Part shown: positions 24,353 to 62,624 of the stretch, piece by piece
How the letters are laid out: the number at the start of each line of letters is the position of its first letter
Numbering within the stretch: position 1 is the stretch's first letter
Virus record (IMG/VR): IMGVR_UViG_3300017917_001123
Location: 1 to 64,000 of that record
Strand: one strand, 5' to 3'
Length of the DNA: 64,000 nucleotides
Notes under the pieces: model-generated
What the model was told of the DNA's origin: nothing
Database searches by the model: none
The model's input: the letters and a program-made list of their open reading frames with translations, nothing else
Position numbers and translations under genes: made by a program

Positions 24353-24599
24353 CGAACGCTATCGTGCTATTAAATGGGCAGAACAGCTTTGTCGAGATCT
24401 CATGGATCCTAGCAAAACTCCTAGAGTGCCGAAAACTATTCGGCAACGGGCTTACAGCGTTCTGCGGCATTTTCCCGAAGAATACTATTTGGCAATGTTA
24501 GCAGAAGCAAGGCCAGATATTATAGAACGAAGAGGTAAACCATTTGATCCTCTGTACAAAATGGTTAAAGATTACGAATTTAAAAAGGAAGAAAAATGA
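24339..24599 (+). CDS. Hypothetical phage protein
   Basis: [10 protein letters not shown]...LRHFP. Confidence 0.75.
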
Positions 24600-25216
24600 A
24601 CCTAGTACCAATGGTAGTTGAAAAGACCAGTCAAGGCGAACGTGCTTATGACATTTACAGCCGCTTACTCAAAGAGCGCATTGTTTTCCTAAACGGCCCT
24701 GTAGATGATCACAGCGCAAACTTGATCGTAGCACAGATGCTGTTCTTGGAAAGCGAAGATCCTACTAAGGACATTAACTTCTACATTAATAGCCCAGGTG
24801 GACTGGTTACTGCTGGTTTGAGCATTTATGACGTTATGCAGTTCGTTAAATGCGATGTAGCAACCTATGTTATGGGTCAAGCGTGTTCAATGGGTTCGTT
24901 CCTGGCACAGGCAGGTGCCAAAGGCAAGCGTTATGTGTTGCCCGAATCACGCACAATGATTCACCGTGTTAGCTCAGGTACTCCAGGTACCAAAGGTAGT
25001 GTTCACGTTCAAGAACTACAATTTGAAGACGCTAAACGCACTTTTGAAGAAAGCCAGCGCATTAATAAGCGTCTAACTGAACTGTATGTGCGCCACAATA
25101 CCGCAGGTAAGACCTACGAAGAAATGTTCGAAGCGATGAAATTTGATACATTTTTGGGCTCCGAAGAAGCGGTTGCTTGGGGTCTAGCAGACCACGTTAT
25201 CAGCAAGCACGAATAA
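24596..25216 (+). CDS. clpP: ATP-dependent Clp protease proteolytic subunit
   Basis: [19 protein letters not shown], catalytic SMG and MIH. Confidence 0.95.
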
Positions 25217-30404: not shown

Positions 30405-30482
30405 CTAAATACCCTATAATACGATAAACCTCGAGTTTGGGGCTGTTGCGGCCCCAATAAATATAGTATCGTAGGGGATAAA

Positions 30483-33400: not shown

Positions 33401-36400
33401 ACTTTCACAAACAGTTGCGGCTTATAACTACATCAAATCAATTCTGCCAGATATCATCCAAGGTACCGCTCTAGCAGTAACACAACAAAATACTGTTCCT
33501 CAAGTTATTATTGGCTACGGTCCAGGAGATGCTTCTGCTGTAACACAAGCACAGGCTAAGATTGATGTTGTTACTAACATTACTTCTAACGGTCCAAGTG
33601 TGGCTAGTGCTCAAAGCACATTACCGTTAACAAGAAGCACTGATCCAGATATTATCAACGGAGCAATTTTACTATCAGCAAACAGAACATTTATTATTGC
33701 TGAAACTATTGCGTTTGTTAATAATTCTTTCTTAACAGGATTTGTTTACGATAGAGAAACTTGCCGTAGAGACATTGGCTTAATTGTCGATGCGTTAGCA
33801 TTTGACTTAAAGAACGGTGATATTAACTCATCAATTAACGCGGCTGATAGCTATTACGCAGGCAATGTTCAACAAGTTCTTCAAAACGAACTAGCACAAA
33901 CTGTGGGCGCAATCGGTTATATTAATACTCTAGCGCAACAACTATTTGATCAAACTCCTATTACAACACTATACGGTTTTGTTCCACAGAGAATAGACAC
34001 TATTATTGGTGAAGTAGGGGCAAAGGCTCAAGTTACCAACCTAACTACAGCAATGCAGGGTATCTTAAACAACGATCCTGCGTTCAACCCACCTAAGTAT
34101 AACGACGAAATGGACATCTTCTTAATGAACGATGCGACCATGTTACGTTACTTAGGCGGTAACGGTCACGGTGGCTTTATGAAGGTACTTGACCCAGAAG
34201 GACAAATTAAATCTAAGTCACCATATACTCAGACATGTTCATCATTCTCACAGAGTATTGGCCGACACAGATTTGCTGGTGGTTTCTTTGTTGACGGATT
34301 CTGCGGTAACTTGCCATTAGTTACAGCAGCCGGTACAGCAAGTCCAGATACAAACGGTAACTTAATTTACATTCCAGTAACTGGCGTGAGACGTTTACCT
34401 GTATTCCCAACTTACTTTATTCACGAAGGTGTTAAGTACGAAGCGGACTACATGCAGAATTATGACCCAGTTAACCAAACTGGTACTCTTGTTCTAAACC
34501 CAAACAACCCAGGTGGTATTAGTTCCGTAAGTGTTAACAGCGGAAATACACAAAACGAATTTAAACCGAACGTTGCTCAACTACCAGTAACATTTAGTTC
34601 TCCAGGCACACCTGGTGGTGCTACTGCTCGTGGTTATGCTGTAACTAACGCATCTGGTAATATACAAACCATTGTTATCACATTCCCAGGTGTAGGATAT
34701 GTAACAGAACCAAGTGTTAGCCTAGGCGGTGCTACGTTTAACTTTATTATCGACGGCGGTGCTATTACATCAATGTCTGTCAACTACGGCGGTATTGGTT
34801 ATACAACAGGTACACAAATTAATATTGCAAGTCCAGGCGGTGCCGGGTTAACTGCTACCGCAACAATTACAGGTGTTGACGGACTTGGCGCAATTACTTC
34901 TATCAATTTAGTATCAGGCGGTACAGGATACACTAGTGTTCCAACTGTTACATTTGGTCGTCAAGTATTCAGCGCAAACTTAGTAAACGGCTTTATTGGC
35001 AATTTACCATCAAAACTAGAACTAATTACTGCTGGTAACCGTTCTATGTTAGCCAACGACTTTACACAGTTAAACGATTTAGGCTATGGTATTTTTGCTA
35101 CCAACGGTGGATTCATCGAAAACGTTTCGATGTTCACTTACTACTGCTATACCTCATACTACGCACTGAACGGTGCTATTCTAAGAACTATTACAGGTTC
35201 TACAGCTTACGGTACTTACGGTCTAGTCGCAGAAGGTTCAAACCCATTAGAGGTACCAACTGCGGTTACAATGTCAGACGAATTAACACAGATTGCTACT
35301 GTTTATAATCAGGCTCCGTACATTAACGCCAAAGGCGGTGCTGACATTTATGTAACACTAGACAGCACCTACGGTTACCCTCCATACTCTAATGGGGAAA
35401 TTGAGATCAATCACAACGGTATTAGAAAGACATATTCTCTAAGATCTGCTAAACAGATTTCTGGAAACTTATATGCTCTATCAATTGATTCAACCGGTGG
35501 TGGATTATACGCTATTGTTCCGAACGGCGAGCCGTTGACAATTCGTGTTAAGTTTATTTGGAGACTAGGCGGCTTAAATGCTAAGACATTAACTCGTCCA
35601 AGTACAGTTTTAACACTGGCGGAAAACTCAATTTACAACTACCGTATTCTAGAGTACACAGACTTAGGTAGTGACTATGCGTTAGCTGAAGCTGATCAGT
35701 CATATGACTACATTCAACTAACTCCATACAGTCAGAGTAACCTATATCGCCAAGGTGTTGGTCGCCCAACTATCAGCGTTGCTGGTAGTGGTTACACTTC
35801 GACAACTACACAGTATGGTGTAACATTTGACAGTCCTCCATCAAAGACTGCGGTAGTTAACGGTGTTCAGGGAACTGTTGATAGTCCAGTAACACAGTTA
35901 TCGATCGCAAGTTCTAGCGGAGCAATTCACCCTGGTATGAGAATTACTGGTGCTGGCGCTATTGCTAACCAGTACGTAACTTGGGTGAGCTTGGATAGAT
36001 CTATTATTCAAACAAGCCAGGCACAGGTTTGGTCGACTGCAAGTGCTACACTAACATTTGTTGGTACTACCGCAACTGGTTATGCCAAGGCCAACGGAAC
36101 AAGCATTACTGGAATCACAATTACTGATCCCGGTACTGGTTACGACACAGCGCCAGGTGTTACAATCGTACCCGGAAGTGGTGTACAAGCTCAGGCAACT
36201 GTTTCCTTAAGCGGTACAAGCGGAACTAACATTGTTAAGGTTCTTCCTTTAAATGGACAAGATACTGCTCGTATTAACATTGGACTAACAAGCCCAACTC
36301 CATACTATTACGTATTTGGTTACGAAGGTCAGACTTATAAGATTACAGATTATAAGACTCCTGTTCAAACAGGTCAAGCATGGGGCGAAATTCAAATTTC

Positions 36401-38849: not shown

Positions 38850-41560
38850 TGACAGCACCAGTATGGGTAACACCAGCAGGTGATTTAGGAACCATTGAGC
38901 AAGTCAGGGCTTGTAACATAAGTTTACAAGCCTCTGGTTCCAACATCACATATTCGTTAATCAGCGGAGAAATTCCTAAAGGTCTACAGATAAACACAAC
39001 AACTGGAAGCCTTTACGGAACACCATTTTACGTTGGTAATAATATTGACTACGAATTTGTTATCCGTGCTAAAAATTCTAGTGGTGCTTCGGATAGAACA
39101 TTTACACTAACTGTGGCCGGTCCAGTGGATCCATTATGGGATACGCCAGCTGGTTACTTACAAGTCGGTCCTAACTTAGAACCTTATGCCTTAAACAAAA
39201 ATCGTGTTGACTTTAGATTACAGGCAACCGTAGCAGGCTTGCCTCAAGGCCAAAGCCTAAGATACTATATTGCCGAAAATGACGGCCAGCTTCCTCCCGG
39301 ACTATCTCTAAACGAATCTACAGGATTAATCAACGGGTATGTTAATGATCAGCTGACTATTGATTATCTTGCTAGTAAGAGTGGCGGATACGATGCTGAG
39401 TACTACGACGTATATCCATATGATCATGCGTTAATTATTAATAACGTTGTAGAAGGTAAGCTAGTAAGTATCACAAAAATTTATCAGTTTTACATAACAG
39501 TAACTGACGGTGTTAGTGCGTCTAGAAGAAAATTCCAAATTAGAATCGAAGACCCTAATACTTTTAGAGCAGATACAACACAGATCACTGATGATACAAC
39601 CAACTACCTAGCAAACATTGGATATCTAATTCCTCCAATTTGGTTAGGTACCGATAATAGCATTTTACCTAACCCAAGTAATTTAGGTACACTCCGTGCT
39701 AACAATAATCAGGTAATAGATTTAAACGCATACGATCCATATCCTTTTGTAGGTCCTATTAGTTTTGATTGGGAAACTATTCAAGTTAATCCCGAAATTA
39801 GAATGTTGTCCAACTCAGAGACAAACATTACAGGTGCGCCAACTTCAAACTTAGCAGGACAAAGTTTTTTAATTGTTAGTAAGGCAGTCGGTGTTCCGAC
39901 TGCTGGAATGTACTTACAGTTATTCACTTACCTTCCGAACGCAACACAAACAATTTACAGAATTAATTCAGTAGAAAAATACGGTAGTGATGGCTATAAA
40001 CTAGGTATTGGTATTGTAACAAAGTATAAGGGGGAAATTAACACAGTTAACAATTTCCCTTTATCAAATACCGCGGGGGATATGTACAAGGTACTGGCTG
40101 ATAATCGGTATTACGTGTGTACTGGAGTTCCGTCTACATTTATTGATGTAGGAGCAAATGCGCCTGGGTACATTGATTATTACTTAGAAAATACAATTAC
40201 AGATCTTACCACAGTATTTGTTGGAAGTTTAAGTAAGCAACCGCCAGGCTTGGAATTAGATATTGAATCTGGATTACTATACGGACGTATTCCTTATCAA
40301 CCTGCTTACAGTCAAAACTACAGATTTACTGTAAGAATTACAAAAACTGATCAAGAAAATGGCCAGTCAGTTTCCGATAATCATATCTTTAATCTAACAC
40401 TTAAAGGCGATATCGAAACTACTATTGCCTTTACCAGCGGAACAGTTCTAGGCGACCTAAGACCAGGACATGTTAGCGAGTTATCAGTTGAAGCAATTCA
40501 TACTGCCGCAAATTTAGATATCACTTATAGCTTAACTGGAGGTAAGCTACCACCGGGATTAACTTTAACACCGACTGGAAATATTACAGGTGTAATCCCT
40601 ACAAATATTCAAACTAACTTTGATGTTGGAGCAACTGGGTTTAACACAACAACCTTTGACGGCGGAACTACAACATTCGACAGAACATATACATTTAATA
40701 TCACTGCTAGAGATAGTTACTTGTTCTCAGCCGTAAGTAAAGATTTTACAATTAACATTGTCGAAAACACAGTCACACCTTACACAAATATCTACGTTAA
40801 ACCATTATTAAAGAAAGAACAACGAGCATACATTAGAAGTCTTGTAGAAGATCTCAATATTTTTGATCCAAAGCTAATGTACAGACTCGACGACCCAAAC
40901 TTCGGTGTTCAACGAGAAGTTAAGATGACACTCGAATACGGTGTTCAAAAAATTGACCTAGACAAGTATGTCCCGGCCCTCACAACTTACTTTAAAAGAA
41001 GAAGATATTTCTTTGGCGATTTGAAAACAGCCATTGCTGTTGATAGCAAGGGCAACCATTTATATGACGTAGTCTACTTAGATATTGTCGATGACCAGAT
41101 GCTTGGAAATACCATCAGTGTAGCAAAGAGCTTTACTCAGGAAGTTAACGGACAAATAGTCACATACTATCCCGACAGCGTTTTAAACGAGCAATTTGCC
41201 ATAAGTTCAATTACCATTGATGCGAACCATCCAATATCTATTAACGATGAGTATAGACCTAGATTTATGCAGACTCTACAAGCCGATACTGGCGTTCCAT
41301 TGGGGTTTGTTAAGGCACACGTCTTATGCTACACGTTACCTAACGAAAGCAGTAAAATTGTAAGCAGTATTAAAAGATCTGGTTTTGATTTTAAATTAAT
41401 CGACTTCGATATTGATAGAATTGTCATCGAAGATACACTAGATTTTGAAGGTAAAAAATATCTAGTGTTTGGAGCAAGCAGTACAGATACTGGCTTCTAT
41501 CTAAGCACCGAAGACGATGAGGATATCTTAACTGAGGATGAGGTAGCTTTATCAATATAA
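38849..41560 (+). CDS. Virion structural protein with Ig-like repeats
   Basis: Repeated LPPGL.L....G.I.G.P..Y.F motifs. Confidence 0.75.
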   Translation: MTAPVWVTPAGDLGTIEQVRACNISLQASGSNITYSLISGEIPKGLQINTTTGSLYGTPFYVGNNIDYEFVIRAKNSSGASDRTFTLTVAGPVDPLWDTPAGYLQVGPNLEPYALNKNRVDFRLQATVAGLPQGQSLRYYIAENDGQLPPGLSLNESTGLINGYVNDQLTIDYLASKSGGYDAEYYDVYPYDHALIINNVVEGKLVSITKIYQFYITVTDGVSASRRKFQIRIEDPNTFRADTTQITDDTTNYLANIGYLIPPIWLGTDNSILPNPSNLGTLRANNNQVIDLNAYDPYPFVGPISFDWETIQVNPEIRMLSNSETNITGAPTSNLAGQSFLIVSKAVGVPTAGMYLQLFTYLPNATQTIYRINSVEKYGSDGYKLGIGIVTKYKGEINTVNNFPLSNTAGDMYKVLADNRYYVCTGVPSTFIDVGANAPGYIDYYLENTITDLTTVFVGSLSKQPPGLELDIESGLLYGRIPYQPAYSQNYRFTVRITKTDQENGQSVSDNHIFNLTLKGDIETTIAFTSGTVLGDLRPGHVSELSVEAIHTAANLDITYSLTGGKLPPGLTLTPTGNITGVIPTNIQTNFDVGATGFNTTTFDGGTTTFDRTYTFNITARDSYLFSAVSKDFTINIVENTVTPYTNIYVKPLLKKEQRAYIRSLVEDLNIFDPKLMYRLDDPNFGVQREVKMTLEYGVQKIDLDKYVPALTTYFKRRRYFFGDLKTAIAVDSKGNHLYDVVYLDIVDDQMLGNTISVAKSFTQEVNGQIVTYYPDSVLNEQFAISSITIDANHPISINDEYRPRFMQTLQADTGVPLGFVKAHVLCYTLPNESSKIVSSIKRSGFDFKLIDFDIDRIVIEDTLDFEGKKYLVFGASSTDTGFYLSTEDDEDILTEDEVALSI

Positions 41561-51090: not shown

Positions 51091-51105
51091 TATTTGGCGG
51101 AAAAT

Positions 51106-51912
51106 ATGGATTACTATGAAACATTAGGCGTGCCTAAAGGGGCGTCAGAAGAAGAAATTAAAAAAGCCTATCGCAAATTGGCTATGAAGCATCATCCCGA
51201 CCGAGGTGGGGATGCTTCTAAATTTAAAGAAATTGAAGAAGCGTACAGAATACTAGGCGACCCAAATGCTAGAGCAGAGTACGATCAACCAAAACAATAC
51301 TCGTCTAGAGCAGACGGATTCGGAGTCCCTCCAGGCTTTGAAGGATTCTTCCATCACTTTGGAGGAAACTTTAGCGACTTGTTTCGTCCACAACGACCCC
51401 GAAATAGAGATTTAAATTTCCACACTCGTATTACACTAGAAGATGCGTTCTACGGTAAAGAGCTTGTGGTTAATTTCTTTAAAGCAAACGGTCAAGAAAA
51501 AATCCTTAATGTAAAAATTCCACAGGGCATTCAAAACGGAATGACTCTGCGCTTACAAGGTGTAGGCGATGATAGTTTACCGCAAGCACAGGTTGGAGAT
51601 GTACTAATTACGGTCGAAGTAGTACAAAATAGAGAATTCAAACGTCAAGGGGATGATTTAATCAAAGAGGTTGAAATTAACTGTATCGATGCTATGCTTG
51701 GTAAAGAGATACTAATTACAACTATTGATGGAAAAACACTAACAGGTCGTGTTCCTCCGGGATCGCAACCAGATAGTATCCTAAACATTCCCGGACAAGG
51801 AATGCCCAACATGAATAACCCAAACAGTCGTGGTAGATTGTTGCTACACATAAGAATGACTGTTCCGCAGTTAACTGAAGATCAAAAAGAACAACTTAAG
51901 AAGATATTTTAA
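51106..51912 (+). CDS. dnaJ: DnaJ-class co-chaperone (no zinc finger)
   Basis: [13 protein letters not shown]-terminal GDLI..I..AMLG domain. Confidence 0.9.
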
Positions 51913-52422
51913 ATGCTAGATATAGTTAAATTCCCAAATCCAATTTTAAGACAGAAGATGCCGGACTTCGACTTTTCAAATCCAGTTATGGACCCAAAAG
52001 AACTGGAGAAAGAAATGATCGAAACAATGTTAAAGAACTACGGAATGGGTCTGGCCGCCAATCAAGTAGGAATAGCTACACGGGTGTTTACTATGGGACA
52101 CCCAACAATGCCAGAAAATGCCAAAGCGTTTTTTAATCCAGAAATTGTAGCAAACACAGAATCTGTCAAAGATTTGGAAGAAGGATGCTTGAGTTTTCCC
52201 GGAATTTATGTTAATATTAAACGTCCTACAGCCATAAAGGCTCGTTGGCAAAATAGTTCCGGTGAATGGGAGGAGGGAGAGTTTGAAGGATACGAATGTA
52301 AATGCTTCTTACATGAATTCGATCATTTGGAAGGAATTGTTTTTTCAGATCGAGTCAGTCAGTTAAAATGGGCTATGGCAATTAAAAAACTTAAATCTAA
52401 TAAGAGGAAACACAATGCTTGA
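51913..52422 (+). CDS. def: Peptide deformylase
   Basis: GMGLAANQVG, EGCLS, HEFDH. Confidence 0.95.
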   Translation: MLDIVKFPNPILRQKMPDFDFSNPVMDPKELEKEMIETMLKNYGMGLAANQVGIATRVFTMGHPTMPENAKAFFNPEIVANTESVKDLEEGCLSFPGIYVNIKRPTAIKARWQNSSGEWEEGEFEGYECKCFLHEFDHLEGIVFSDRVSQLKWAMAIKKLKSNKRKHNA

Positions 52423-54691
52423 ACCAAGCCAAGACCTAGAGAAAATTTTTGAACGTGCTATTAAGCTCGCAATGAGCCATAAGCACGAATACATTACACT
52501 AGAGCATTTCTTATACGGTCTTCTCATAGATCCTAAGTTTGAAAAAACTCTTACAAACTTTGGAACAAATGTTTCCGACCTAGTAAAAGATATCGAGCTA
52601 TATGTAAGCTCAGAGCTTAACGATATCAAAATTGAAGAGGAAATTAAACCAAAGAAAACACACAGCATGGAACGTATGCTGAATCGTGCTTTCACGCAAG
52701 TATTGTTCAGCGGTCGCTCTACTATTGAGCCCGTTGATTGTTTTATTAGTTTGTTCAGCGAAAAGAAATCATTTGCTGTCTATAGCCTACGCAAGGCAAA
52801 GATCGATAAAGACAAGTTTATTGAATATATTAATCAAGAAGCGATCGAAGAAGAAGCAACAGAAGGCGAAGGTACTCCAAGCCCGCAACTCGAACGTCTG
52901 CTTGTTCAGTATTGCCAGAACCTTACTAAGAAGGCAAAAGAGAAAAAGATCGATCCAGTTATTGGCCGCGAAAAAGAAATTGAGGAAATGCAACTTATCC
53001 TTGCTCGCCGTACTAAGTCTAATGTTATGCTTATCGGTGATCCAGGCGTAGGTAAGACTGCTATCGCAGAAGGCCTTGCTAAGAAGATTGTCGAAGGCAA
53101 TGTTCCTAAGTACATTCAAGATCACACAGTTTACAACCTAGACATTAGCTCTATGCTTGCGGGCAGTAAGTATCGCGGTGATTTTGAAGAACGTCTCAAG
53201 ATGGTCATCACTGCCCTTGAGAAGAAAAAGAAATGTATTCTGTTTATTGACGAGGCACACATGATGAGTGGTGCTGGCGCAGTAAGCGGTGGTTCAAACG
53301 ACATGGCTAATATGCTCAAGCCAGCACTTGGCAAGGGCACTATTAAAGTTATCGCAAGCACAACGTGGGAAGAATTCCGCAAGCACTTTGAAAAGGATCG
53401 TGCGCTGATGCGTCGATTCCAGCGTGTTGTTGTAGACGAGCCTAATGAAGCAACTGCTATTAAGATCCTTAAAGGTCTTAAGAAGTATTACGAAAAGCAC
53501 CACAACGTTAAAATTACTAATCAAGCAATTATCGATGCTGTTAAGTATAGCGTCAAGTATATTAGTGATCGTCATTTGCCCGATAAAGCAATTGACTTGA
53601 TTGATTGTGCCTGTGCTCGCTTTAAGGTCAAAGACGAAGAAGGCGGTATTGTTGACCATGACGAGATTGTGTTCGAAGTGGCTAAGATTGCTAACTTGCC
53701 GTTAGATCAAATTGCCGCTAAGGAAAACAAGAACCTTAAGGACATGGATAAAAACATGCGAGGTAAGGTGTTTGGTCAAGAAAAAGCAATCGATGCTCTA
53801 CTTGACAAGATTTATATCGCACAAGCAGGTTTGAAATCTATTAACAAACCAGTTGGTAACTTCTTATTCGTTGGACCTACGGGTTGCGGTAAGACTGAAA
53901 CTGCTAAAGTATTAGCAGAGTCTATGGGTGTTCAATTGGTTCGCTTTGATATGAGCGAATTCCAAGAACAACATTCTGTAGCAAAGTTCATTGGTGCGCC
54001 TCCGGGATATGTTGGATTTGAGGACAATGCCGGCCAACTTATTACTAAACTACAAGAACATCCTAACTGTATTCTATTGCTTGACGAAATCGAAAAAGCA
54101 CACCCAAGCGTAAGCCAAGTACTGCTAGGATTGATGGATAACGGATTTGTAACTGGTTCTAATGGTAAGAAGGCAGATGGTCGTAACGCAATCATCATTC
54201 TTACTTCTAACCTAGGCGCATCAGATGCTGAAAAGAACGCTGTTGGTTTCGGTAAGATGGAACGTGATTACGATAACAAAGATGCTGTTAATCGTTTCTT
54301 TGCTCCAGAATTCCGCAATCGTTTAGACGGCATTATCCAGTTCAACAAACTCGGTCAAGATACAATGATTAAGATTGTTAAGAAGTTTATCGACGAACTT
54401 AATGCTCTTATTAAAGATAAGAATATTCATGTTAAACCAGACATGGCAGCTCTTGAGTATCTTGTTAAGAAAGGCTTTAATCCTAAAATGGGTGCTCGTC
54501 CGTTGGCTCGGGTTATCGATGAAGAAATTAAAAAGCCTCTATCACGAGAAATCCTGTTTGGCAAATTGTCAAACGGTGGAGTCGTAAACTTGACGTTTAA
54601 AGACGACAAGTTTGTGTTTGAGCTAGTTGAAGTATTGTCAATCGACAAAGCAGTAACGTCAGAAGAGGCAGATGAAGAAACTGTTGACTAA
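52415..54691 (+). CDS. clpA: ClpA-type AAA+ unfoldase
   Basis: HEYITLEH N-domain, two Walker A motifs, VGF ClpP-docking loop, no M domain. Confidence 0.92.
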   Translation: MLEPSQDLEKIFERAIKLAMSHKHEYITLEHFLYGLLIDPKFEKTLTNFGTNVSDLVKDIELYVSSELNDIKIEEEIKPKKTHSMERMLNRAFTQVLFSGRSTIEPVDCFISLFSEKKSFAVYSLRKAKIDKDKFIEYINQEAIEEEATEGEGTPSPQLERLLVQYCQNLTKKAKEKKIDPVIGREKEIEEMQLILARRTKSNVMLIGDPGVGKTAIAEGLAKKIVEGNVPKYIQDHTVYNLDISSMLAGSKYRGDFEERLKMVITALEKKKKCILFIDEAHMMSGAGAVSGGSNDMANMLKPALGKGTIKVIASTTWEEFRKHFEKDRALMRRFQRVVVDEPNEATAIKILKGLKKYYEKHHNVKITNQAIIDAVKYSVKYISDRHLPDKAIDLIDCACARFKVKDEEGGIVDHDEIVFEVAKIANLPLDQIAAKENKNLKDMDKNMRGKVFGQEKAIDALLDKIYIAQAGLKSINKPVGNFLFVGPTGCGKTETAKVLAESMGVQLVRFDMSEFQEQHSVAKFIGAPPGYVGFEDNAGQLITKLQEHPNCILLLDEIEKAHPSVSQVLLGLMDNGFVTGSNGKKADGRNAIIILTSNLGASDAEKNAVGFGKMERDYDNKDAVNRFFAPEFRNRLDGIIQFNKLGQDTMIKIVKKFIDELNALIKDKNIHVKPDMAALEYLVKKGFNPKMGARPLARVIDEEIKKPLSREILFGKLSNGGVVNLTFKDDKFVFELVEVLSIDKAVTSEEADEETVD

Positions 54692-55352
54692 AAAACTGTT
54701 CTATAGAAAGTACCCTTACAAAGTAGAATTAAAATGTGAGGGTGCTAACTATATTAGATACAGAGGCATCGATGCCGTTATCAGAGGGTGCGAAAAGGAC
54801 GAAAAGTTTGAAGGTCGCACCTACTGGGGACGTTTGACTAAAGAAGTTGATACTGTTAAACTCCATAAATTTGCTAAGATTATTAAGCCGTTTTTATCCA
54901 AAGGCTTAAAAGTCAGAAGCGAAGGCAGTCGCTATAATTTCTTTTTAGAAGATAAAGCTACTACAGATTTCCTTGTTAAAAAGTTTGAGGAATTTGTAGT
55001 TTCTGTTTCCGAGCCTGCTAGTGAAGAAGAGCTCGAGTTTTTAACTGATAATAATCGAAAGGTTATTGTTGACGAGCTCCCTTACGGTAAGTTTAAACAT
55101 AAAATTGTCTTTAAGAATAACTGGTCTATAGTAAAGGGTCAGAACTTTCTAAACTGGATAAAAAAGTACCCAGAAGAAGACTACAAAATCTCTAGATCAA
55201 GTTACGAGTACTTGTCGGCCCAATCTAGATACTGTCAAGACCCGTTTATGTACATTACAGAAGCTAAAATGCTTACAATGTTACAGCTTTTTGCTGGAGA
55301 TAACATCAAATATGTGGAAGAATTTGTGCCACGGTCTACCTTACTCCTGTAA
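54672..55352 (+). CDS. Hypothetical phage protein
   Basis: 226-aa coupled ORF. Confidence 0.75.
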   Translation: MKKLLTKKLFYRKYPYKVELKCEGANYIRYRGIDAVIRGCEKDEKFEGRTYWGRLTKEVDTVKLHKFAKIIKPFLSKGLKVRSEGSRYNFFLEDKATTDFLVKKFEEFVVSVSEPASEEELEFLTDNNRKVIVDELPYGKFKHKIVFKNNWSIVKGQNFLNWIKKYPEEDYKISRSSYEYLSAQSRYCQDPFMYITEAKMLTMLQLFAGDNIKYVEEFVPRSTLLL

Positions 55353-55377
55353 TAAATACAGGGCGTAAGGAAAAAAC

Positions 55378-55821
55378 ATGCCGGCACTGAGTAAAACACT
55401 AAACTTCTATACAGATATCTATACAACAGGCACTACTGTAGTAATGACTACTACTAGTCAACTCAGCATGCCTGCTTATTACAAAACCCATAGCACCAGC
55501 AATCCTCCCTGGAATAAGCTAACATTTGCTAGCAATCCAGAAAAAGGCACAGGCTACTATGGTCTTTCTGGCGGATTACATACTGTAACATATTCAGTAA
55601 GTAACACCTTTGCCGGAACTGTTACAATGCAAGCTACTTTAGCCGCAACACCAGCGGAATCTGACTGGTTTGACGTAGACGGCACTAAGATGACTAGAGT
55701 TTATCAAAACACAAACTCAACATCTACAGTAGCAACAACATTCACAGGGAACTTTACTTGGGTTAGAGCCGTTGCCGAACTAGGGCAAGGTACGCTATTA
55801 AACATCAAGTACAATTACTAA
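55378..55821 (+). CDS. Putative virion protein (Thr-rich beta)
   Basis: TAAATA upstream; G.GYYG..GLHTV...FTGNF.WVRA. Confidence 0.6.
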   Translation: MPALSKTLNFYTDIYTTGTTVVMTTTSQLSMPAYYKTHSTSNPPWNKLTFASNPEKGTGYYGLSGGLHTVTYSVSNTFAGTVTMQATLAATPAESDWFDVDGTKMTRVYQNTNSTSTVATTFTGNFTWVRAVAELGQGTLLNIKYNY

Positions 55822-55822
55822 T

Positions 55823-56206
55823 ATGAAACTATACGAATTTTTTGGAACATGGCAAGCGAAGAACCCAATGGATGTTGATAATCCAATGGATAAGAACGGC
55901 GACGGTAATGTTACCCGAGAAGAAAAAGAACAATTCAAAAACGATCTTTTCTTTTATATTTTAGACAACGACGATATTCACAAGAAACAGTTCTACGAAG
56001 TAACAGAACAAATTTACGCAGACAAGAAGGTAGGCGAAAATGTTTGGATGCCGATGGTTAACAGAGGCTGTATGGAATATTACAAAGAACGCCACCTTCA
56101 AGACGATCCATCAGATTTGTTTACAAAGGAATTTAGAGAAGACCTTTGTAAAATGTTAGATGACCACTTCCGCAAAGACGTCTTAAAAGGCGAATACAAG
56201 TATTAA
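55823..56206 (+). CDS. Hypothetical protein with EF-hand-like loop
   Basis: DKNGDGNVTREE; N-terminus MKLYEFF. Confidence 0.65.
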   Translation: MKLYEFFGTWQAKNPMDVDNPMDKNGDGNVTREEKEQFKNDLFFYILDNDDIHKKQFYEVTEQIYADKKVGENVWMPMVNRGCMEYYKERHLQDDPSDLFTKEFREDLCKMLDDHFRKDVLKGEYKY

Positions 56207-56214
56207 GGACTGAA

Positions 56215-59091
56215 ATGCTTTTAACTGAATTTTTTAAGATTGTCAATGAAGGCGGAAACCTTGCTGTAGGTGGGCAAGAGGCTGAACAAATTAATTTAAA
56301 GGTTACTAACAGAAGTTATATTGTTCCTATCCTAAACGACCTTCTTTCAGGCATCAATAGTGCGTTCAATAAAAAATACAAGAAGCCCCTATGGAATCCT
56401 GAACTAATTCAAAATCAAAGATTCCTAAGCGGAAGTTCTCTACACTTTTTTAACGTAAGAGGAATTCCGGACGAGGTATTTGTACAAAAGAAACCAAAGG
56501 TTGGCGACATTGACACAATGGTTCCTAGAGAACTAGAAGCAGAACTAGAACAGTTCTTAGCAAGTATTCAAGGAAAGCAAATCGGTAGCGCAAAGTTTAT
56601 TGGCTTCCAGCGTGGTAACGAACAGTTCAGCAGTCTTTGGGAATTACAAGAACCTCCTATTAAAATTCAAATTGATTTAGAGTTTGTTGAATACCAGCAA
56701 GGTAATCCAACAGACTGGGCAAGATTTAGTCACAGCTCAAGCTGGGACGATATGAGCGAAGGTGTTAAGGGCGTTTTCCACAAGTGGATGATTAACGCAT
56801 TAACAAGTCTAACATCTCAAGACTTCTTACTTCGAAAGATGGTAGGCCGAGGCAACGCAAGAGCAGAACAGAATGTTCCTACAACAGACAACATGATTTC
56901 TTTTGCTGTTAGTAGTAAAGAGGGCGGTGGCCTACGTGCCAAGTACGAGCCAGTCCTAGATGCCAGCGGTCAGCCGCTAGTAGTAGACGGGTTGCCTGTT
57001 ATGAAGAGATTACCTACAACAGGCTACGAACAAGATCTAGGAAAGATATTTCAAGCAATATTAGGCCATAGAGTAAATGAAAAAGGTCTACAACAAGCGT
57101 TACCAAAAACTTGGTCATTTGTCGGATTGCTAGACTTAGCCAATTCTATCTTTACACAAGAAGAAAAACAAAATCTTGTTCAAAGTATGATCAACAAATG
57201 CTACGGACAAGGCGCACAGGGTTTATATAAAAACGATCCTGAAAGAGATTCTGCTGAAAAAGATGCGGCACTTAATTTAATGTTCAAGAAATTAGGAGTT
57301 CAACCTCCGGCAGACTTTAAGCAGATAAAAGCAGACTACGTAGCAAACTATCGTCGTGTAAGCGAAAGCCGTTTATTTGAAGAAGAGCCACAGGTAAAGG
57401 CACAGTTCCGCAAAGGCATGCCGCACTTACGCAACCTTAAGCCTGCGGACTTAATTGACTTCTTGGAAGAACTACACGAAAAGAACGGTGCTTTCAAATT
57501 AGCAAACATTCCGCTAAATGTTAAAGTTGACGGCTTTGGCGGACGGTTTGGAAAGAACAGCGAAGGTAAGCCTTTTATGGCAACTAGCAGAACAGAGCCT
57601 CGCTACGAAGCAGGCTTTGTTAAGTATCATCAACAAAAAGGCACAACAGATCCAGAGATCCTACAACGTGCTGGATTATTTGATCAGCTATTCAACGAAA
57701 TGATGAAGGCTGTTAAACTTGTCGACAGCAAGTTAGGACCAGACTTCTTAGTAAACAAACAAGTTACTTGTGAAGTTTTATTCTTGCCATTTGCTACACG
57801 TACAGAAAGCGGTCGACTAAAGTTTGTAGGAATAGAATACGACGAACTACCCAAGGGTGTTGACCTAGCCCTAGTCCCATTCCGTGTAACTGATGCCACA
57901 ACAGGAGATGATCTTCCAGATGGAGATCAGATTGTTGAAAAATTAACCACCTTAGGACAACAAGGTAGTGTTATGTTTATTAACAATAGTCTAACACAGG
58001 ACGAGGCATTAGATGTTACTGCTATTGTTCCGCCTATGGAGAACCTACAACAGTTCAAGGCTATGTTAGCAAGTCGTAAGCGTGATCAAGTTGCCGCAGT
58101 AAAGGCCGCAATGGAACCAGTTGGACTTGCTTTAGAGAAAGCAATCGGTGAGGATCCTAATATTGTAGGCAAAGACATCCTCGGTAAAGATTACGAAGGC
58201 ATTGTTATTAACACACGCATGGGTCCTGTTAAAGTAACTAGCCCAGAACAAAAACAAATTATTGCTAACAAGCAGGCCGCAAAAGCAACTGCTCGTCAAG
58301 AACAACCCCGAGACAATCAAAAGAAGGTAGCTGTAGTTGCTATCGGTAGTGCTATTGGGCACATGGGGCATCAACAACTATTTGATTTTGCTGTTAAGAA
58401 AGCAGATGAAACCGGTGGGGATCCGTATTTCTTTATCGGTAATGCTGAAGGTAAGGATGATCCTATTCCTGTACCCGATAAAGTTAAAACGTGGCATCTA
58501 CTCTATCCGCAGTATGCTAAGAACATTAGTGCAGTTACTATGGAGGGAGGGTCATTACTCCAAAAAGTTAAACACGAGCTAATTAATCCGTTGCCCAACA
58601 AACTTCCTAGATATACTACTATCTATATAGTTGTAGGTAAGGACAGAGAAATGATGGCAAATCAAATGGCTAGTGCTTTAATGAAAGCAGTTAATAAGTT
58701 TCCAGGATACGAAAACGTTAAAGCGATTCCATATGTAACAAGCAGAAGCGAAGACGAAGGCGGAACAGGAGTGAGTGGTACTGCCCTGCGCACAGCCATT
58801 AAAACAAAAACTCCGGAAGAAGCATTTGCAATATGGGACAAAGCATTTAATGGTGGTAACTTTGGTGCTGAAAAAATTCCGGCCGAATGGATTAAGCATT
58901 TAATGAGTGTAGCAAAACAGAATATGAATATTCAAAAGCCTGCTCCTGCTCAATTACCTAAGCAGGCAAAGCCACAGGTAAAACTACCACAACAACCTGC
59001 TCCACAACCAAAACGAGGCCAAGTTAATGTCGGCGAAGCGTGGGAAGTAGAAATTGCCAAAGCTATTTCTTTACTAGAAGGTAAGAAATGA
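56215..59091 (+). CDS. Multidomain nucleotidyltransferase (Pol-beta NTase + ligase-like KxDG + HxGH domain)
   Basis: GSS...GDID...QID; VKVDG...EGIVI...VKV; GHMGH...VGKDR...SGTALR. Confidence 0.7.
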   Translation: MLLTEFFKIVNEGGNLAVGGQEAEQINLKVTNRSYIVPILNDLLSGINSAFNKKYKKPLWNPELIQNQRFLSGSSLHFFNVRGIPDEVFVQKKPKVGDIDTMVPRELEAELEQFLASIQGKQIGSAKFIGFQRGNEQFSSLWELQEPPIKIQIDLEFVEYQQGNPTDWARFSHSSSWDDMSEGVKGVFHKWMINALTSLTSQDFLLRKMVGRGNARAEQNVPTTDNMISFAVSSKEGGGLRAKYEPVLDASGQPLVVDGLPVMKRLPTTGYEQDLGKIFQAILGHRVNEKGLQQALPKTWSFVGLLDLANSIFTQEEKQNLVQSMINKCYGQGAQGLYKNDPERDSAEKDAALNLMFKKLGVQPPADFKQIKADYVANYRRVSESRLFEEEPQVKAQFRKGMPHLRNLKPADLIDFLEELHEKNGAFKLANIPLNVKVDGFGGRFGKNSEGKPFMATSRTEPRYEAGFVKYHQQKGTTDPEILQRAGLFDQLFNEMMKAVKLVDSKLGPDFLVNKQVTCEVLFLPFATRTESGRLKFVGIEYDELPKGVDLALVPFRVTDATTGDDLPDGDQIVEKLTTLGQQGSVMFINNSLTQDEALDVTAIVPPMENLQQFKAMLASRKRDQVAAVKAAMEPVGLALEKAIGEDPNIVGKDILGKDYEGIVINTRMGPVKVTSPEQKQIIANKQAAKATARQEQPRDNQKKVAVVAIGSAIGHMGHQQLFDFAVKKADETGGDPYFFIGNAEGKDDPIPVPDKVKTWHLLYPQYAKNISAVTMEGGSLLQKVKHELINPLPNKLPRYTTIYIVVGKDREMMANQMASALMKAVNKFPGYENVKAIPYVTSRSEDEGGTGVSGTALRTAIKTKTPEEAFAIWDKAFNGGNFGAEKIPAEWIKHLMSVAKQNMNIQKPAPAQLPKQAKPQVKLPQQPAPQPKRGQVNVGEAWEVEIAKAISLLEGKK

Positions 59092-59381
59092 AACAGTATA
59101 AAATAACCAGCGAACATTTAAATACTGACAGTCCAGATGATTGCCAGCTAGATCCAAACGATCCAATTCACGAGCTAAAGGTTGTTCAATATTTGGCAGG
59201 GCTAGGTGCCCAACAACGTTTAGCAGAGTACAGAAATAGTTTAAATCAAGGTAGCAATATTACATTGACAGCCGCAGAAAATGCACGTATAATGCGTGAA
59301 CAAAACATTAAACCAGGAACACCAGAATGGTTTAAGTTATGGTTCAGCTTACCGTACTTTACAGGCGAGAAGAAAACATGA
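59088..59381 (+). CDS. Hypothetical phage protein
   Basis: IKPGTPEWFKLWF. Confidence 0.7.
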   Translation: MKQYKITSEHLNTDSPDDCQLDPNDPIHELKVVQYLAGLGAQQRLAEYRNSLNQGSNITLTAAENARIMREQNIKPGTPEWFKLWFSLPYFTGEKKT

Positions 59382-59686
59382 GAGCTGAACAATTTTTAAA
59401 CAAACAATGGTTGACTGAGGATTGGCAAAAGGTCAACAAGAAAGACAAAACAGACGGAATGAGCGACAAGGCTGTTAAAGCATATCGTCGTGAAAATCCA
59501 GGTAGCAAATTAAAAACTGCTGTAACCAAAGACCCAAGTAAAATTAAAAAGGGATCTAGTGATGACAAGCGCCGTTCGAGCTTCTGTGCTAGAATGAGCG
59601 GAATGAAGAAGGCACATGCCTCAGCAAAAACAAAACGAGATCCCGATAGCCCAATTAACAAAGCACTAAGACGTTGGAACTGTTAA
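59378..59686 (+). CDS. Small basic phage protein
   Basis: RRSSFCARM.GMK...INKALRRWNC. Confidence 0.75.
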   Translation: MRAEQFLNKQWLTEDWQKVNKKDKTDGMSDKAVKAYRRENPGSKLKTAVTKDPSKIKKGSSDDKRRSSFCARMSGMKKAHASAKTKRDPDSPINKALRRWNC

Positions 59687-59687
59687 C

Positions 59688-60521
59688 ATGAAGAAACCAG
59701 AAGTGTATCTAGATATGGACGGAGTATTGGCGGACTTCTTTACGGAGTACGCTAAACTTGCCGGAATTAAAAGCGGAAACTATAGAGACATTCCGCCTGC
59801 TAAGACTGATCCTACATTACAAAAAATGGTAGGTACAGATTTTTTTGCTCGTTTGCCTAAGTTTCCATCAGCAGACGACTTAGTGTCTATGGTTGTAAAG
59901 ATGTATGGACATTATCATATTTGCTCGAGCCCTTTGCGTGGAGATCACGAAAACTCAGAAGCACAAAAGAAAGTGTGGATTGAAAAACATCTAAATCCAC
60001 AACCTGTTGATATTGTTATTACTCCGAATAAAGCAAAATGGGCAGTTCAAAAAGACGGTACTCCTAACATTCTTATTGATGACAGAGGTAGCAATATTTC
60101 TGCTTGGGAGGCCGCAGGCGGTATTGGTATCAAATATCAAGCCGACGAGGACAGTTTACAAACCGTTGTTCAAGGATTAAGTCGTGCTAATAAAATCCTA
60201 AAAGGAGAAGAAAAGCACGAGCCACAAAAATTAGTAAGCAAAGATCGCAGTTTGCCAGTAGCAACACACGACAAACCAAATAGCGCATCAGATTTAACAA
60301 CTGTTAAAGAATACGTAAGTTCTTCAGCAGTAACCGGAGTAGCGGCAGTGGGCGGATCAAGTGCCAGCGTTGGTCATCAACTACAACGTAGAGCATTTAA
60401 TAAGTCTTATACAGGAAGCCCTACTACAGGAACAGGTAAAAAATCACCTAAACAACCAAAGCCTAAAATGCAAAAGCCAGGCACAAACGCATTAGATAGC
60501 AAAGGACCATTAGTAACATGA
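59688..60521 (+). CDS. HAD 5'(3')-deoxyribonucleotidase (NT5C-like) with basic tail
   Basis: YLDMDGVLADF, K..W, ILIDD. Confidence 0.85.
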   Translation: MKKPEVYLDMDGVLADFFTEYAKLAGIKSGNYRDIPPAKTDPTLQKMVGTDFFARLPKFPSADDLVSMVVKMYGHYHICSSPLRGDHENSEAQKKVWIEKHLNPQPVDIVITPNKAKWAVQKDGTPNILIDDRGSNISAWEAAGGIGIKYQADEDSLQTVVQGLSRANKILKGEEKHEPQKLVSKDRSLPVATHDKPNSASDLTTVKEYVSSSAVTGVAAVGGSSASVGHQLQRRAFNKSYTGSPTTGTGKKSPKQPKPKMQKPGTNALDSKGPLVT

Positions 60522-62002
60522 ACGAGAATAAAAAAGGCGTAAGAGCCAAAAAACATAAAGTAGCTCATATCGAGCCAAGCAAGCCTCGCAACTTTGTTGC
60601 TAAGAATGCTATTCAGGGCGGAGCAGGTGCTCACAAGGATAAAAAGAAAGCAATGAAGCAAGGTGATACTAAGCACAAGAAAAGTTATGCCGAACATCTT
60701 GACGTTATGTTAAAAAATGCGTTAACAGAAACTAGACAACTTAACGAAACAGGCCTAGACCCAATTCGCCGAATGAAGGCTATTCAATTCATTTGTAACA
60801 AGACAGGTTGGGAAAAGAATTACTTAGAACTAGCCAGCGACGAAGAATTAATGGATCTATACGTAAAAATTAAAAAAGGCGAACCAGTAGGCGAAGGTGG
60901 CGGAATCAGTAAAGATAAAGAAACCAAATTCCATGCTAAGTTAGACAAACTAGTTCACAACACATTTGGTAAAAGAAAAGACGAAAGCGTAAATCCAGAA
61001 TACGACGACGAAGCCGGTATGGCCGACAATAACTTAGAAACACTAGAACGTGCTGTTCAAGGTATTGACGACTTAATCAACAAAGGCGACAATTTGCCCG
61101 AGTGGTGCCAAGAAAAGATTGCTGTTGCTAAATCAATGTTAGTTACAGTTTGGGACTACATGAAGTCTGAAGAAGAAAAAGGCGTATCAGAAGGCGATGA
61201 CCAAAATGTATATAATGTCGACTGGATTGAAAAAGTTCGAGCTGAAGTGGAATCCGGAAGAGATTTAGACGATGCGTTAGATGATCTTCGATACGAATTA
61301 GAAAACGAATATGATGCTGACGAAAATACCGTAGCAAATATTTTAGCTAAAGTTGAGATTAACCTTTCAGACTTACGCTACGGCCTGGGAGAGCAACTAC
61401 AAAAAGTTTCAGAAGGTTCTAAAGTCGACCGCCAAGCAATGCACATTACTAAAAGCATGATGAAACGTCATGGTATGAGCCGCGACGAAGCCGAGGCTGC
61501 GGCCTGGGCACATATCAAGCATCCTAAAAAGAAAAAAGCTCGCAAGGAAAGCGTAGCGGAAGGCGCAATGGATGAACTTTACGCAGATTTATCTGATGCG
61601 TATAATAAACTTGCTCCAAGTATTGAAAAATACAAAGACAAAAAGGGTGCTGAAAATCTATATCAGACTTTAGCGGCAATCGCTAAACAATACGGTGCTG
61701 TTTCAGAATTTAAACGAATGTTAAATGGTGCTCAAAATCGTGCCCATTTAGATTACGATACTAACCCGGGCGGGTTTGAAAACTGGTTCTGGTACTTACC
61801 GTTTGCTGACGATCAAGTAGATGAAGCTTGCTGGAAAAATTACAAACAAATTGGTATGAAAAAGAAAGGTGGACGTACAGTTCCTAATTGCGTACCTAAA
61901 GAAGGTTGGACACACGACAGCTTGGCCGCACAATTATTTGAGCAAGAGTTAACCTACGAAGACAAGCTAAATAACATGTTAGCAAAGAAGATTCAAAAAT
62001 GA
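60518..62002 (+). CDS. Modular polyprotein-like head protein
   Basis: Short modules separated by [LVI]xE motifs; CWKNY..GMKKK...VPNCV module. Confidence 0.65.
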   Translation: MNENKKGVRAKKHKVAHIEPSKPRNFVAKNAIQGGAGAHKDKKKAMKQGDTKHKKSYAEHLDVMLKNALTETRQLNETGLDPIRRMKAIQFICNKTGWEKNYLELASDEELMDLYVKIKKGEPVGEGGGISKDKETKFHAKLDKLVHNTFGKRKDESVNPEYDDEAGMADNNLETLERAVQGIDDLINKGDNLPEWCQEKIAVAKSMLVTVWDYMKSEEEKGVSEGDDQNVYNVDWIEKVRAEVESGRDLDDALDDLRYELENEYDADENTVANILAKVEINLSDLRYGLGEQLQKVSEGSKVDRQAMHITKSMMKRHGMSRDEAEAAAWAHIKHPKKKKARKESVAEGAMDELYADLSDAYNKLAPSIEKYKDKKGAENLYQTLAAIAKQYGAVSEFKRMLNGAQNRAHLDYDTNPGGFENWFWYLPFADDQVDEACWKNYKQIGMKKKGGRTVPNCVPKEGWTHDSLAAQLFEQELTYEDKLNNMLAKKIQK

Positions 62003-62433
62003 GTGATTTAACTAAAGCCGCAAAAATAGCATTCGCAAGTGAATTTGCTTTTTACTTAAAAGCACAGAACTTCCATTGGAACGTCGAAGGTCCATTGTTC
62101 CTTCAGTTCCACGATTTATTTGGTAAAATTTACGGCGAAGTTTATGATAGTATCGACGCATTCGCTGAGCAAATTCGTGCCTTAGGTTCTTATGCTCCTG
62201 CGGCATTTAGCAAGCTCAGTATGCTAAGTCAAATAGACGATGAAGCAGATGTTTTGCCAGCAGACCAAATGCTTCAAGAACTTCTTGCTGATAATGAAAA
62301 AATGATTAAAATCCTAAAAATGGTTTTTGATCTTTCTGAACAACAAGGTACAAACGGTTTTAGTGATTTCATCGCCGGACGCATGGATGCTCATGCTAAA
62401 CACGGCTGGATGTTACGTTCTTCACTAAAATGA
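61999..62433 (+). CDS. dps: Dps/ferritin-like DNA protection protein
   Basis: FHWNVEG..F..FH..F, D..AE.IR, H.KH.WML. Confidence 0.93.
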   Translation: MSDLTKAAKIAFASEFAFYLKAQNFHWNVEGPLFLQFHDLFGKIYGEVYDSIDAFAEQIRALGSYAPAAFSKLSMLSQIDDEADVLPADQMLQELLADNEKMIKILKMVFDLSEQQGTNGFSDFIAGRMDAHAKHGWMLRSSLK

Positions 62434-62624
62434 AAATCAACCAACTACTAGAAAATTTCGCCGATGGTAAAAAGCCAGGCCGCAAAGGCTTGGCAAAACG
62501 TTCTGGAGTAAACTGTAAAGCATCAGTTTCAACTCTACGCAAGGTAGCTAAAAATAGCTCAGGCGAAAAACAACGTATGGCACACTGGTGTGCTAATATG
62601 AAATCTGGTAAATCTAAAAAATAA
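62430..62624 (+). CDS. Small basic protein
   Basis: MKINQLLENFADGK...HW..NMK. Confidence 0.7.
   Translation: MKINQLLENFADGKKPGRKGLAKRSGVNCKASVSTLRKVAKNSSGEKQRMAHWCANMKSGKSKK

Follow-up and report, generated by a model that had tools for sequence, protein, structure and literature searches.

Proteins that travel inside a phage head have been described in several systems, of which the internal proteins of bacteriophage T4 (IPI, IPII and IPIII, together with Alt) come closest to the locus considered here. The T4 prohead protease gp21 cleaves after L/I-x-E, and a 10-aa leader suffices to target a protein to the head (PMC9026906); IPI* is an injected anti-restriction factor (PMC3012670). The locus lies in IMG/VR virus record IMGVR_UViG_3300017917_001123, which spans 331,570 bp at an estimated completeness of 93% and derives from a marine jumbo phage with T4-type head genes; its first 64 kb (64,000 nucleotides) constitute the window analysed. 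A preliminary description, drawn up from the sequence alone, had interpreted a gene cluster at positions 55,823 to 62,624 as encoding late polyproteins that are packaged in the capsid, cut by the prohead protease and injected, probably to act against host defences. The present analysis finds this idea largely right in kind, wrong in the evidence proposed for it and too broad in scope, and the balance tips slightly towards a cluster that encodes phage-head cargo on the T4 internal-protein principle.

The locus resembles the T4 system in having a gp21-type S77 protease in the genome, N-terminal leaders of about 8-16 residues ending in hydrophobic-x-Glu, a putative cargo composed of basic small proteins and an enzyme, and genes scattered behind T4-type late motifs. 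On the other hand, the mature parts of its proteins have no homology to those of T4, two leader types occur instead of one, Val is favoured at P3 where T4 has Leu or Ile, and the cargo would be far more numerous, arranged in shuffled multi-module chains with internal cut sites that are undescribed for T4.

Other described systems are similar in part. The cyanophage cytidylyltransferases (T4-GC190, S-CREM2 ORF154 and S-SCSM1 ORF91) share an HxGH adenylyltransferase domain (residues 703-906 of the 958-aa protein in the cluster) and the same kind of leader, but they have one catalytic domain at only ~24% identity, whereas in the 958-aa protein a Pol-beta-type nucleotidyltransferase and an RNA ligase precede it in the same chain. 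The phiKZ-like giants (phiKZ, 201phi2-1 and SPN3US) likewise contain many head-internal (ejection or inner-body) proteins, which a gp21-related protease cuts after Glu at short motifs, with redundant propeptide sites (PMC9026906); however, their motif is S/A-x-E, their lineage and capsid proteins are unrelated, and the present phage, whose core head genes are of T4 type, shares no protein family with them. Iyer et al. (2017, PMC5512222) described polyvalent proteins, which are also multi-domain polypeptides, predicted to be packaged and delivered with the DNA and sometimes to be proteolytically processed. In contrast to them, the cluster has no MuF, portal fusion or metallopeptidase domain detectable by Pfam, contains three enzymatic domains as well as modules, most of which are tiny (30-90 aa) and non-enzymatic, and would have its [LIVM]xE joints cut by the prohead protease. 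Finally, the T4 RNA repair proteins (Rnl1, Rnl2 and Pnkp) are matched by a ligase fold with KxDG in the second domain of the 958-aa protein, but they are separate cytoplasmic early proteins, and no kinase or phosphatase domain was found in the 958-aa protein.

Leaders and the prohead protease

In the proposed scheme, a short N-terminal leader would serve as a capsid-targeting propeptide that carries a protein into the prohead core, and the phage's own gp21-type (S77) protease would cut after [LIVM]-x-E, freeing the mature protein and, in multi-module proteins, also separating the modules. Two leader types would be in use, M[KR]x..[FIL][IL]xE (class 1) and MxLxEFF..[LIVM]xE (class 2). A Peptidase_S77 prohead protease is indeed encoded in the genome (G000) at 134062-134484 (94.3 bits, E 1.1e-27), where it is placed between the portal/core and the scaffold/capsid genes. 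In the major capsid protein, LSE/S (the slash marks the cut) aligns with the T4 gp23 maturation site LTE/A, and a conserved [L/I]-x-E protease specificity can therefore be reasonably inferred.

All N-termini singled out in the preliminary description are present, namely MKLYEFF in the open reading frame (ORF) at 55823, MLLTEFFKIVNE at 56215, MRAEQFL..WLTE at the ATG at 59378 and MKINQLLE at 62430, and all 11 tetrapeptides that it listed as module-boundary motifs were found. The ATG at 59378 is an internal start in a longer ORF from 59339; it forms an ATGA overlap with the upstream stop and matches the start of a homologue (P0003). A putative propeptide that ends in an [LIVM]xE site, conserved in homologues, is recognized at 56215 (..VNE/GGN), 59378 (..LTE/DWQ) and 62430 (..LLE/NFADG). 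In the 127-aa ORF at 55823, the sole nearby [LIVM]xE is LYE at residues 3-5, and its orthologues begin MKLYEFFG (relative L018) and MLLNEFFG (relative L020).

These leaders recur more often than chance predicts. When the N-terminal 9-mers were compared all against all, 8 similar pairs were found at a score of at least 24 against 1.4 +/- 1.2, and a position-specific scoring matrix (PSSM) trained on external DUF6321 leaders recovered 8 N-termini at a score of at least 4 against 0.48 +/- 0.72 in shuffles, with 7 of these 8 belonging to unrelated proteins. The class-2 type, written as MxLx[ED][FILM][FI], occurs three times (55823, 56215 and an 80-aa protein that adjoins the portal at the gp67 position) against 0.13 in shuffles (P < 5e-4). 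The same leader is also carried by unrelated proteins in relative L020. Since the leader copies differ at synonymous codons, constraint acts on the protein.

The position of the predicted cut relative to the following domain provides further evidence. Of the top 120 relatives of the 958-aa protein, 116 have an [LIVM]xE that terminates at residues 8-16 and is directly followed by an invariant GGN, and in the AlphaFold model of the protein residues 1-14 are disordered, with a predicted local distance difference test score (pLDDT) below 50. Homologues from Vibrio phage Va1 and Xanthomonas phage BUDD start with MGGN, that is, at the predicted P1' residue, and in that of Campylobacter phage CP220 another leader precedes the GGN; all three of these genomes contain an S77 protease. 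For DUF6321 proteins, [VILM]xE stands directly before the domain start in 117 of the 117 homologues with a DWQ start among the top 120, of which 94 begin M[KR]..[EDQ][FILVM][ILVFM].E. Five DUF6321 proteins from podophages are leaderless, and an S77 protease is absent from all three of their genomes in which it was looked for. Taken together, these patterns support the view that the leaders are separable, portable extensions whose closing [LIVM]xE abuts the domain start.

Two loci outside the window are likewise rich in leader-bearing ORFs. One, at G000 192064-197292, adjoins the large terminase and includes a protein starting MKTFKDYLTE/S; the other, at G000 302170-309342, includes the N-termini MKIQQIFE, MRIQDLLSE, MRIHHLL and MRLFEF, as well as a 499-aa ORF (307495-308994) that follows a late motif and contains four V-x-E-G sites. 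The protein encoded at 192064 matches an internal-head-protein family over its leader, and its homologue in phage PA5oct is a virion protein confirmed by electrospray-ionization tandem mass spectrometry (ESI-MS/MS).

The fusion enzyme and the small modules

Judged from sequence and structural modelling, the 958-aa protein combines three domains in one chain, namely a probable, divergent Pol-beta-type nucleotidyltransferase, an RNA ligase and a domain resembling nicotinamide mononucleotide (NMN) adenylyltransferase (NMNAT). It has more than 800 metagenomic homologues; sequence searches of Pfam, NCBIfam and PDB with the ORF found nothing. In domain 1, residues G73, S74, S75, D98 and D100 are invariant across 30 sequences and the domain model reaches a pLDDT of 89; every one of its top structural hits is a terminal nucleotidyltransferase or a Pol X enzyme, at weak scores (Z at most 7.9, Foldseek E above 1e-3). 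Domain 2 (residues 393-686) gives a VIA match to 5cot_A (Z 11.2), a match to T4 Rnl2 (Z 8.8) and a Foldseek match to a Naegleria RNA ligase (E 1.4e-4), and K437, D439 and G440 of motif I are invariant in the same 30 sequences. Domain 3 (residues 703-906) gives a VIA match to 2qjt_B (Z 12.3) with an NMNAT/NadM fold and invariant H716, G718 and H719 in the 30 sequences; S-CREM2 ORF154 aligns with residues 716-816 (BLASTP E 1e-6). Beyond domain 3, the model has pLDDT below 50 at residues 907-944 and a helix at 942-956. This closing helix (59050-59091), which follows [IV]GE, ends every homologue inspected regardless of the modules before it, and may represent a second, C-terminal propeptide or an anchoring element; T4 Alt is cleaved at both ends. 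The best guess is that the protein would act in RNA-end repair or tailing, perhaps together with synthesis of nicotinamide adenine dinucleotide (NAD).

Distant homologues of this protein have been reported from virions. The T4-GC190 cytidylyltransferase belongs to the cyanophage core genes, and purified S-SM1 virions were shown to contain its product (PMC3037559); NMNAT-like proteins were found in virions of S-SCSM1, S-CBWM1 and S-SZBM1 (PMC9602691, PMC10665884). In S-CREM2 virions, both ORF154 (cytidylyltransferase) and ORF137 were detected by mass spectrometry; the latter is a 490-aa protein with a C-terminal DUF6321. The T4-GC190 gene-cluster label is present in the S-PM2 and P-SSM7 records. 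ORF154 starts MKNFSSFLTE/A, so that with its P-SSM7 and S-RIM2 orthologues it conforms to MK[KN]FS.FLTE/A, and T4-GC190 orthologues start MKKFSAFLTE/A; the cytidylyltransferase homologue of jumbo phage CBB has no leader. The keyword-matched passages of the cyanophage virion papers mention neither a targeting leader nor protease sites. In literature searches, only one review named both a capsid targeting sequence and cyanophages, and no paper with the spelling 'cytitidyltransferase' was found.

A second group of candidate cargo consists of small modules, which occur both as separate ORFs and in chains. More than 100 homologues of the 958-aa protein, reaching 1668 aa in length, possess a C-terminal tail of 55-761 aa that is a shuffled array, in varying order, of modules found in the cluster as separate ORFs, including DUF6321, 'NFADG' and several modules of the 494-aa ORF, with lysozyme and LysM in some. 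In two proteins (P0152 and P0133) the NFADG module is joined to the tail of a 958-aa homologue after ..LLE or ..LNE; in another (P0080) it is attached to a DUF6321 protein and follows ..LKE. In a set of 53 non-redundant tails, [LIVM]xE is found 481 times against 285 +/- 14 expected (ratio 1.69, z +13.6), and in the enzyme cores of the same proteins it is depleted (ratio 0.76, z -7.1; proteome baseline 1.14); these z-scores are inflated because the homologues share ancestry, which weakens the case for cargo, but the directions and the controls are still informative. As controls, [LIVM]xK and [LIVM]xD are neutral in the tails, and [AGS]xE and [KR]xE are depleted. Alignment ends within the tails peak exactly at the Glu, at 5.9 times background, and alignment starts peak 0-6 residues before it, with a flat profile for [LIVM]xK; Val at P3 is enriched 2.8-fold. 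In these tails, [LIVM]xE marks the homology breakpoints. Such avoidance of sites in folded domains together with their concentration at joints is what selection under exposure to a protease of this short specificity would be expected to produce.

Within the window, this pattern is represented by the 494-aa ORF. A HMMER search with it returned 3435 representative proteins, which match module by module, and its homology blocks break at about 71-73, 221-229, 297, 343-346 and 432-437, coinciding with the sites E71, E225, E299, E348 and E436; further [LIVM]xE sites include E77 and E126, and breaks near 155 and 461 have no coinciding site. The count of [LIV]xE in this ORF is 11 against 7.8 expected (p = 0.14), and that of V-x-E-G is 4 against 0.16 (p = 1.5e-5), or p = 0.03 when post-hoc choice is removed by considering all a-x-E-b patterns. 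The ORF and its orthologue begin with MNE/NKKG, and in relative L020 the same module follows ..VEE/NKKG within a leader-bearing protein; the 494-aa protein thus starts exactly at a module joint, with Met in the P3 place. The term 'polyprotein' used in the preliminary description is apt for this ORF and the homologue tails, and does not extend to the whole cluster.

The DUF6321 assignment scores 49.3 bits against a Pfam gathering cut-off of 28.5, and 4414 homologous 90%-identity clusters were found, the best of them 80-96% identical; the homologues belong to widely differing phages, namely T4-like cyanophages, jumbo phages, and pelagiphage and cyanobacterial podophages. The top 120 homologues listed are 62-96% identical to the window copy, mostly ~80-90%, a conservation that appears unusually strong for a small phage protein. 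Literature searches found no paper mentioning DUF6321.

Proposed head cargo and alternative explanations

On the reading preferred here, the cargo would comprise the 958-aa three-domain enzyme and the small, basic, Cys-containing modules (DUF6321, NFADG and those of the 494-aa ORF). The enzyme, DUF6321 and NFADG would be targeted by removable leaders, the 494-aa ORF would be a cargo chain with protease joints, and all of it would remain in the head beside the DNA until both enter the cell together. Targeting, cleavage, retention in the head, ejection and the functions of the cargo (RNA repair or NAD supply; DNA binding or condensing) are what we infer from the patterns above, and any anti-defence role would be conjecture. 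For the DUF6321 module itself, the extreme sequence conservation argues in favour of action inside the head, in the form of DNA condensation.

Several results weigh against head cargo. A leader is present in only four of the eight flagged ORFs; the 97-, 277- (NT5C-like), 494- and 144-aa (Dps-like) ORFs have none, which leaves the 494-aa array without an evident route into the prohead, and the 97-, 277- and 144-aa ORFs show no feature of targeting at all. When all N-termini were compared with the ipIII and ipI leaders taken from the T4 record (MKTYQEFIAE type; ungapped BLOSUM), the cluster leaders fell within the shuffle distribution, and only the protein at G000 192064, outside the window, was clearly similar. 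The preliminary description had named a background-level motif frequency as grounds for rejection, and [LIV]xE in the window does follow compositional expectation in every ORF (13 against 13.9 in the 958-aa ORF); counts of [LIV]xE, [LIV]xE[GAS] and [LIV]xEG per ORF are at background, with the V-x-E-G sites of the 494-aa ORF as the exception. In BUDD, the enzyme domains are consecutive separate leaderless genes beside primase/helicase replication genes, and the Va1 domain-1 homologue is likewise leaderless, so that in certain phages the enzyme acts in the cytoplasm. Neither phrog_2667, the internal-head-protein family, nor any other head family is matched by an ORF of the cluster. A perfect sigma70 promoter inside the cluster suggests that the cluster is not purely late; the late motif and a gp55-like factor stand in favour of the late expression that had been claimed. 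With respect to the virion data, the authors of the S-CREM2 and S-SCSM1 studies themselves warn that abundant non-structural proteins may co-purify.

In one alternative, the ORFs encode ordinary cytoplasmic proteins, that is, a nucleotide/RNA-metabolism and stress operon (RNA ligase/nucleotidyltransferase/NMNAT, 5'-nucleotidase and Dps) plus small DNA-binding proteins, in which the N-terminal motif would serve folding as a short helix, localisation or degradation by a Clp system of the phage itself, and the [LIVM]xE excess would reflect the composition of acidic linkers. The flanking ClpA/B-like, DnaJ, deformylase and DNA polymerase genes fit this account, as do the sigma70 promoter, the leaderless enzyme homologues among the replication genes of BUDD, the four ORFs without a leader and the background-level motif count in the window. 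It is nevertheless considered unlikely, as it leaves unexplained why the [LIVM]xE of the leader ends exactly at the first domain residue, why leaderless homologues start at that same residue, why cores are depleted (0.76) and tails enriched (1.69) while [LIVM]xD and [LIVM]xK are neutral, why podophage homologues have no leader, and why homologues were detected in purified virions. Chance resemblance, with N-termini and tetrapeptides that have nothing to do with one another and were merely picked by eye, is very improbable: short motifs are common, and neither the window motif count nor the likeness to the T4 leader exceeds chance, but chance is rejected for the leaders by externally trained or unbiased tests, and also for the late motif and for the distribution of sites across the family. 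A different alternative accepts packaging and processing but not an effector role, and holds that the basic modules condense or neutralise head DNA or form the prohead core, with the enzyme possibly a passenger, by analogy with T4 gp67/gp68, the internal peptides and the protease-made adenovirus core proteins. The short, very basic, Cys-containing nature of the modules is in line with it, and the conservation of DUF6321 fits a DNA or capsid constraint better than an arms race with host defences. Moreover, the DUF6321 gene of podophage P-SCSP1g lies between capsid and tail-tube genes, and the class-2 leader recurs on the 80-aa protein that adjoins the portal, in the place of gp67. Still, T4 internal proteins are basic and DNA-associated, yet IPI* is injected, so these roles are not mutually exclusive, and the enzyme fusion and the lysozyme/LysM tails of some homologues suggest action outside the capsid; a purely non-effector role is accordingly given a low probability as well.

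The head-cargo reading can be extended to a broader view, which is tentative and held with more doubt than confidence, namely that marine T4-type phages, from cyanomyoviruses to 330-370-kb jumbos, share an unrecognised 'plug-and-play' head-cargo system. With a portable leader of 8-16 residues and [LIVM]xE joints, dozens of small modules and whole enzymes could be chained, divided into separate genes and exchanged among phages; every cargo protein would be packed into the head and come out in individual parts. The flagship would be the nucleotidyltransferase/RNA-ligase/NMNAT fusion, which would come in with the DNA and mend RNA or restore NAD ahead of all phage gene expression.

If head cargo is the true explanation, a rule based on sequence features would predict the head-borne proteins of uncultured T4-type phages: a leader, hydrophobic-x-Glu at the domain start, and a site depleted in folded domains and enriched in linkers. 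It would also account for the recurrence of cytidylyltransferase-like enzymes in cyanophage virion proteomes and give a role to abundant, conserved, unannotated marine virome families (DUF6321 in more than 4,000 clusters, the 494-aa modules in more than 3,400 representative clusters). Furthermore, the T4 internal-protein concept, so far one of single small proteins, would come to include shuffled multi-module chains, and the function delivered at injection would appear to be RNA repair or NAD supply.

Operon layout, promoters and neighbouring genes

The features of the locus are collected in Table 1. The flagged stretch is a tightly packed plus-strand operon in which the ORFs from 56215 to 62624 are separated by 1-8 nt or overlap by 4 nt. 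The gene order of the region is syntenic in relatives on 358-kb and 156-kb contigs, and a family-B DNA polymerase follows downstream. Nucleotide and protein searches of an isolate phage collection found no close relative of the cluster, and Pfam/NCBIfam searches with the 494-, 127- and 97-aa ORFs gave nothing usable.

Table 1. Features of the head-cargo candidate locus (window positions; leader and domain assignments are predictions)
Feature	Position	Strand	Support or remark
T4-type late promoter motif AATAAATA	55351..55358	+	fits cyanomyovirus consensus NATAAATA; 20 nt upstream of ORF 55378
147-aa ORF, first gene of the operon behind the late motif	55378..55821	+	without leader
127-aa ORF, class-2 leader MKLYEFF	55823..56206	+	orthologues in L018, L020
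958-aa ORF, class-2 leader and three enzyme domains	56215-59091	+	
Leader of the 958-aa protein, residues 1-12, ends VNE then GGN	56215..56250	+	
Domain 1, Pol-beta-superfamily nucleotidyltransferase (GSS ... DxD), residues 15-380	56251..57354	+	phrog_19290 E 2e-29
Domain 2, ATP-dependent RNA-ligase-type nucleotidyltransferase, motif I K437-V-D-G	57391..58272	+	structural match
Domain 3, NMN adenylyltransferase / cytidylyltransferase-like HxGH domain (H716-M-G-H719)	58321..58932	+	phrog_3041 E 3e-12
Disordered Pro/Gln-rich linker, VGE site, conserved C-terminal helix ending LLE-GKK	58933..59091	+	
97-aa ORF, without leader	59088..59381	+	no family match; conserved in relatives
Perfect sigma70-type promoter (TTGACA, 17 nt, TATAAT; 12/12)	59265..59293	+	inside 97-aa ORF, 85 nt upstream of ATG 59378
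102-aa DUF6321 ORF with class-1 leader	59378-59686	+	
Class-1 leader of the DUF6321 protein, residues 1-14, ends LTE then DWQK	59378..59419	+	
DUF6321 module, small, basic, ends ..RRWNC	59420..59686	+	PF19846 E 8e-13
277-aa ORF, NT5C-type 5'-deoxyribonucleotidase domain and low-complexity tail, without leader	59688..60521	+	PF06941 E 5e-6, phrog_2643 E 2e-23
494-aa ORF, array of ~7 small modules, without leader	60518..62002	+	
144-aa Dps/ferritin-like protein, without leader	61999..62433	+	PF00210 E 1e-18, phrog_3636
64-aa ORF, leader MKINQLLE then basic 'NFADG' module	62430..62624	+	

The preliminary description had placed the operon behind a TAAATA motif. The motif is real, as ATAAATA (55352-55358 at this locus) occurs 37 times in the genome, and 26 of these copies are followed by a gene start at a distance of 5-45 nt, where 0.86 would be expected. 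Given that the motif lies 20 nt before ORF 55378, however, the operon begins one ORF upstream of the flagged start. The encoded 147-aa protein bears a weak likeness to virion structural protein families (phrog_13657, E 1e-14; phrog_14467, 'virion structural protein', E 1e-3) and is syntenic in relatives. The late promoter consensus of cyanomyoviruses, NATAAATA, has been published (PMC2984593). Elsewhere in the genome, ATAAATA is found ahead of large structural ORFs and of several genes with leaders, and a gp55-like late sigma factor is encoded. The exact form TATAAATA was tried as a marker and set aside: the window contains 3 such sites against 4.5 expected, none of them at the cluster, and the shorter ATAAATA is the informative motif.

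Near-consensus sigma70 sites (at least 11 of 12 positions) number 63 in the genome and lie mostly 7-60 nt upstream of genes. These 63 sites and the 37 ATAAATA motifs give a T4-like promoter grammar with early and late classes. The site at 59265-59293 is not conserved in the close relative L018, and its significance is therefore uncertain. On the minus strand, the region at 218-231 kb is densely populated with sigma70 sites.

At the same locus in relative L020, a contig of 156 kb, a 138-aa ORF (12887-13303) has the leader MKIIDLLE and an HExxH metallopeptidase-like motif, and stands beside two other leader-bearing ORFs, which shows that the putative cargo set turns over between relatives. Immediately upstream of the cluster (51094-54691) lies a chaperone/protease block consisting of a DnaJ-like protein (272 aa), a deformylase-like protein (169 aa) and a ClpA/B-like ATPase (758 aa), all assigned by Pfam from the syntenic relatives L018 and L020. 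Elsewhere in the window, a 206-aa ORF at 24596-25216 appears ClpP-like by eye, and two large ORFs of 2788 and 903 aa (30483-41560) follow an ATAAATA at 30457, with a further motif preceding ORF 41585; the two are probably large virion proteins, of fibre or decoration type.

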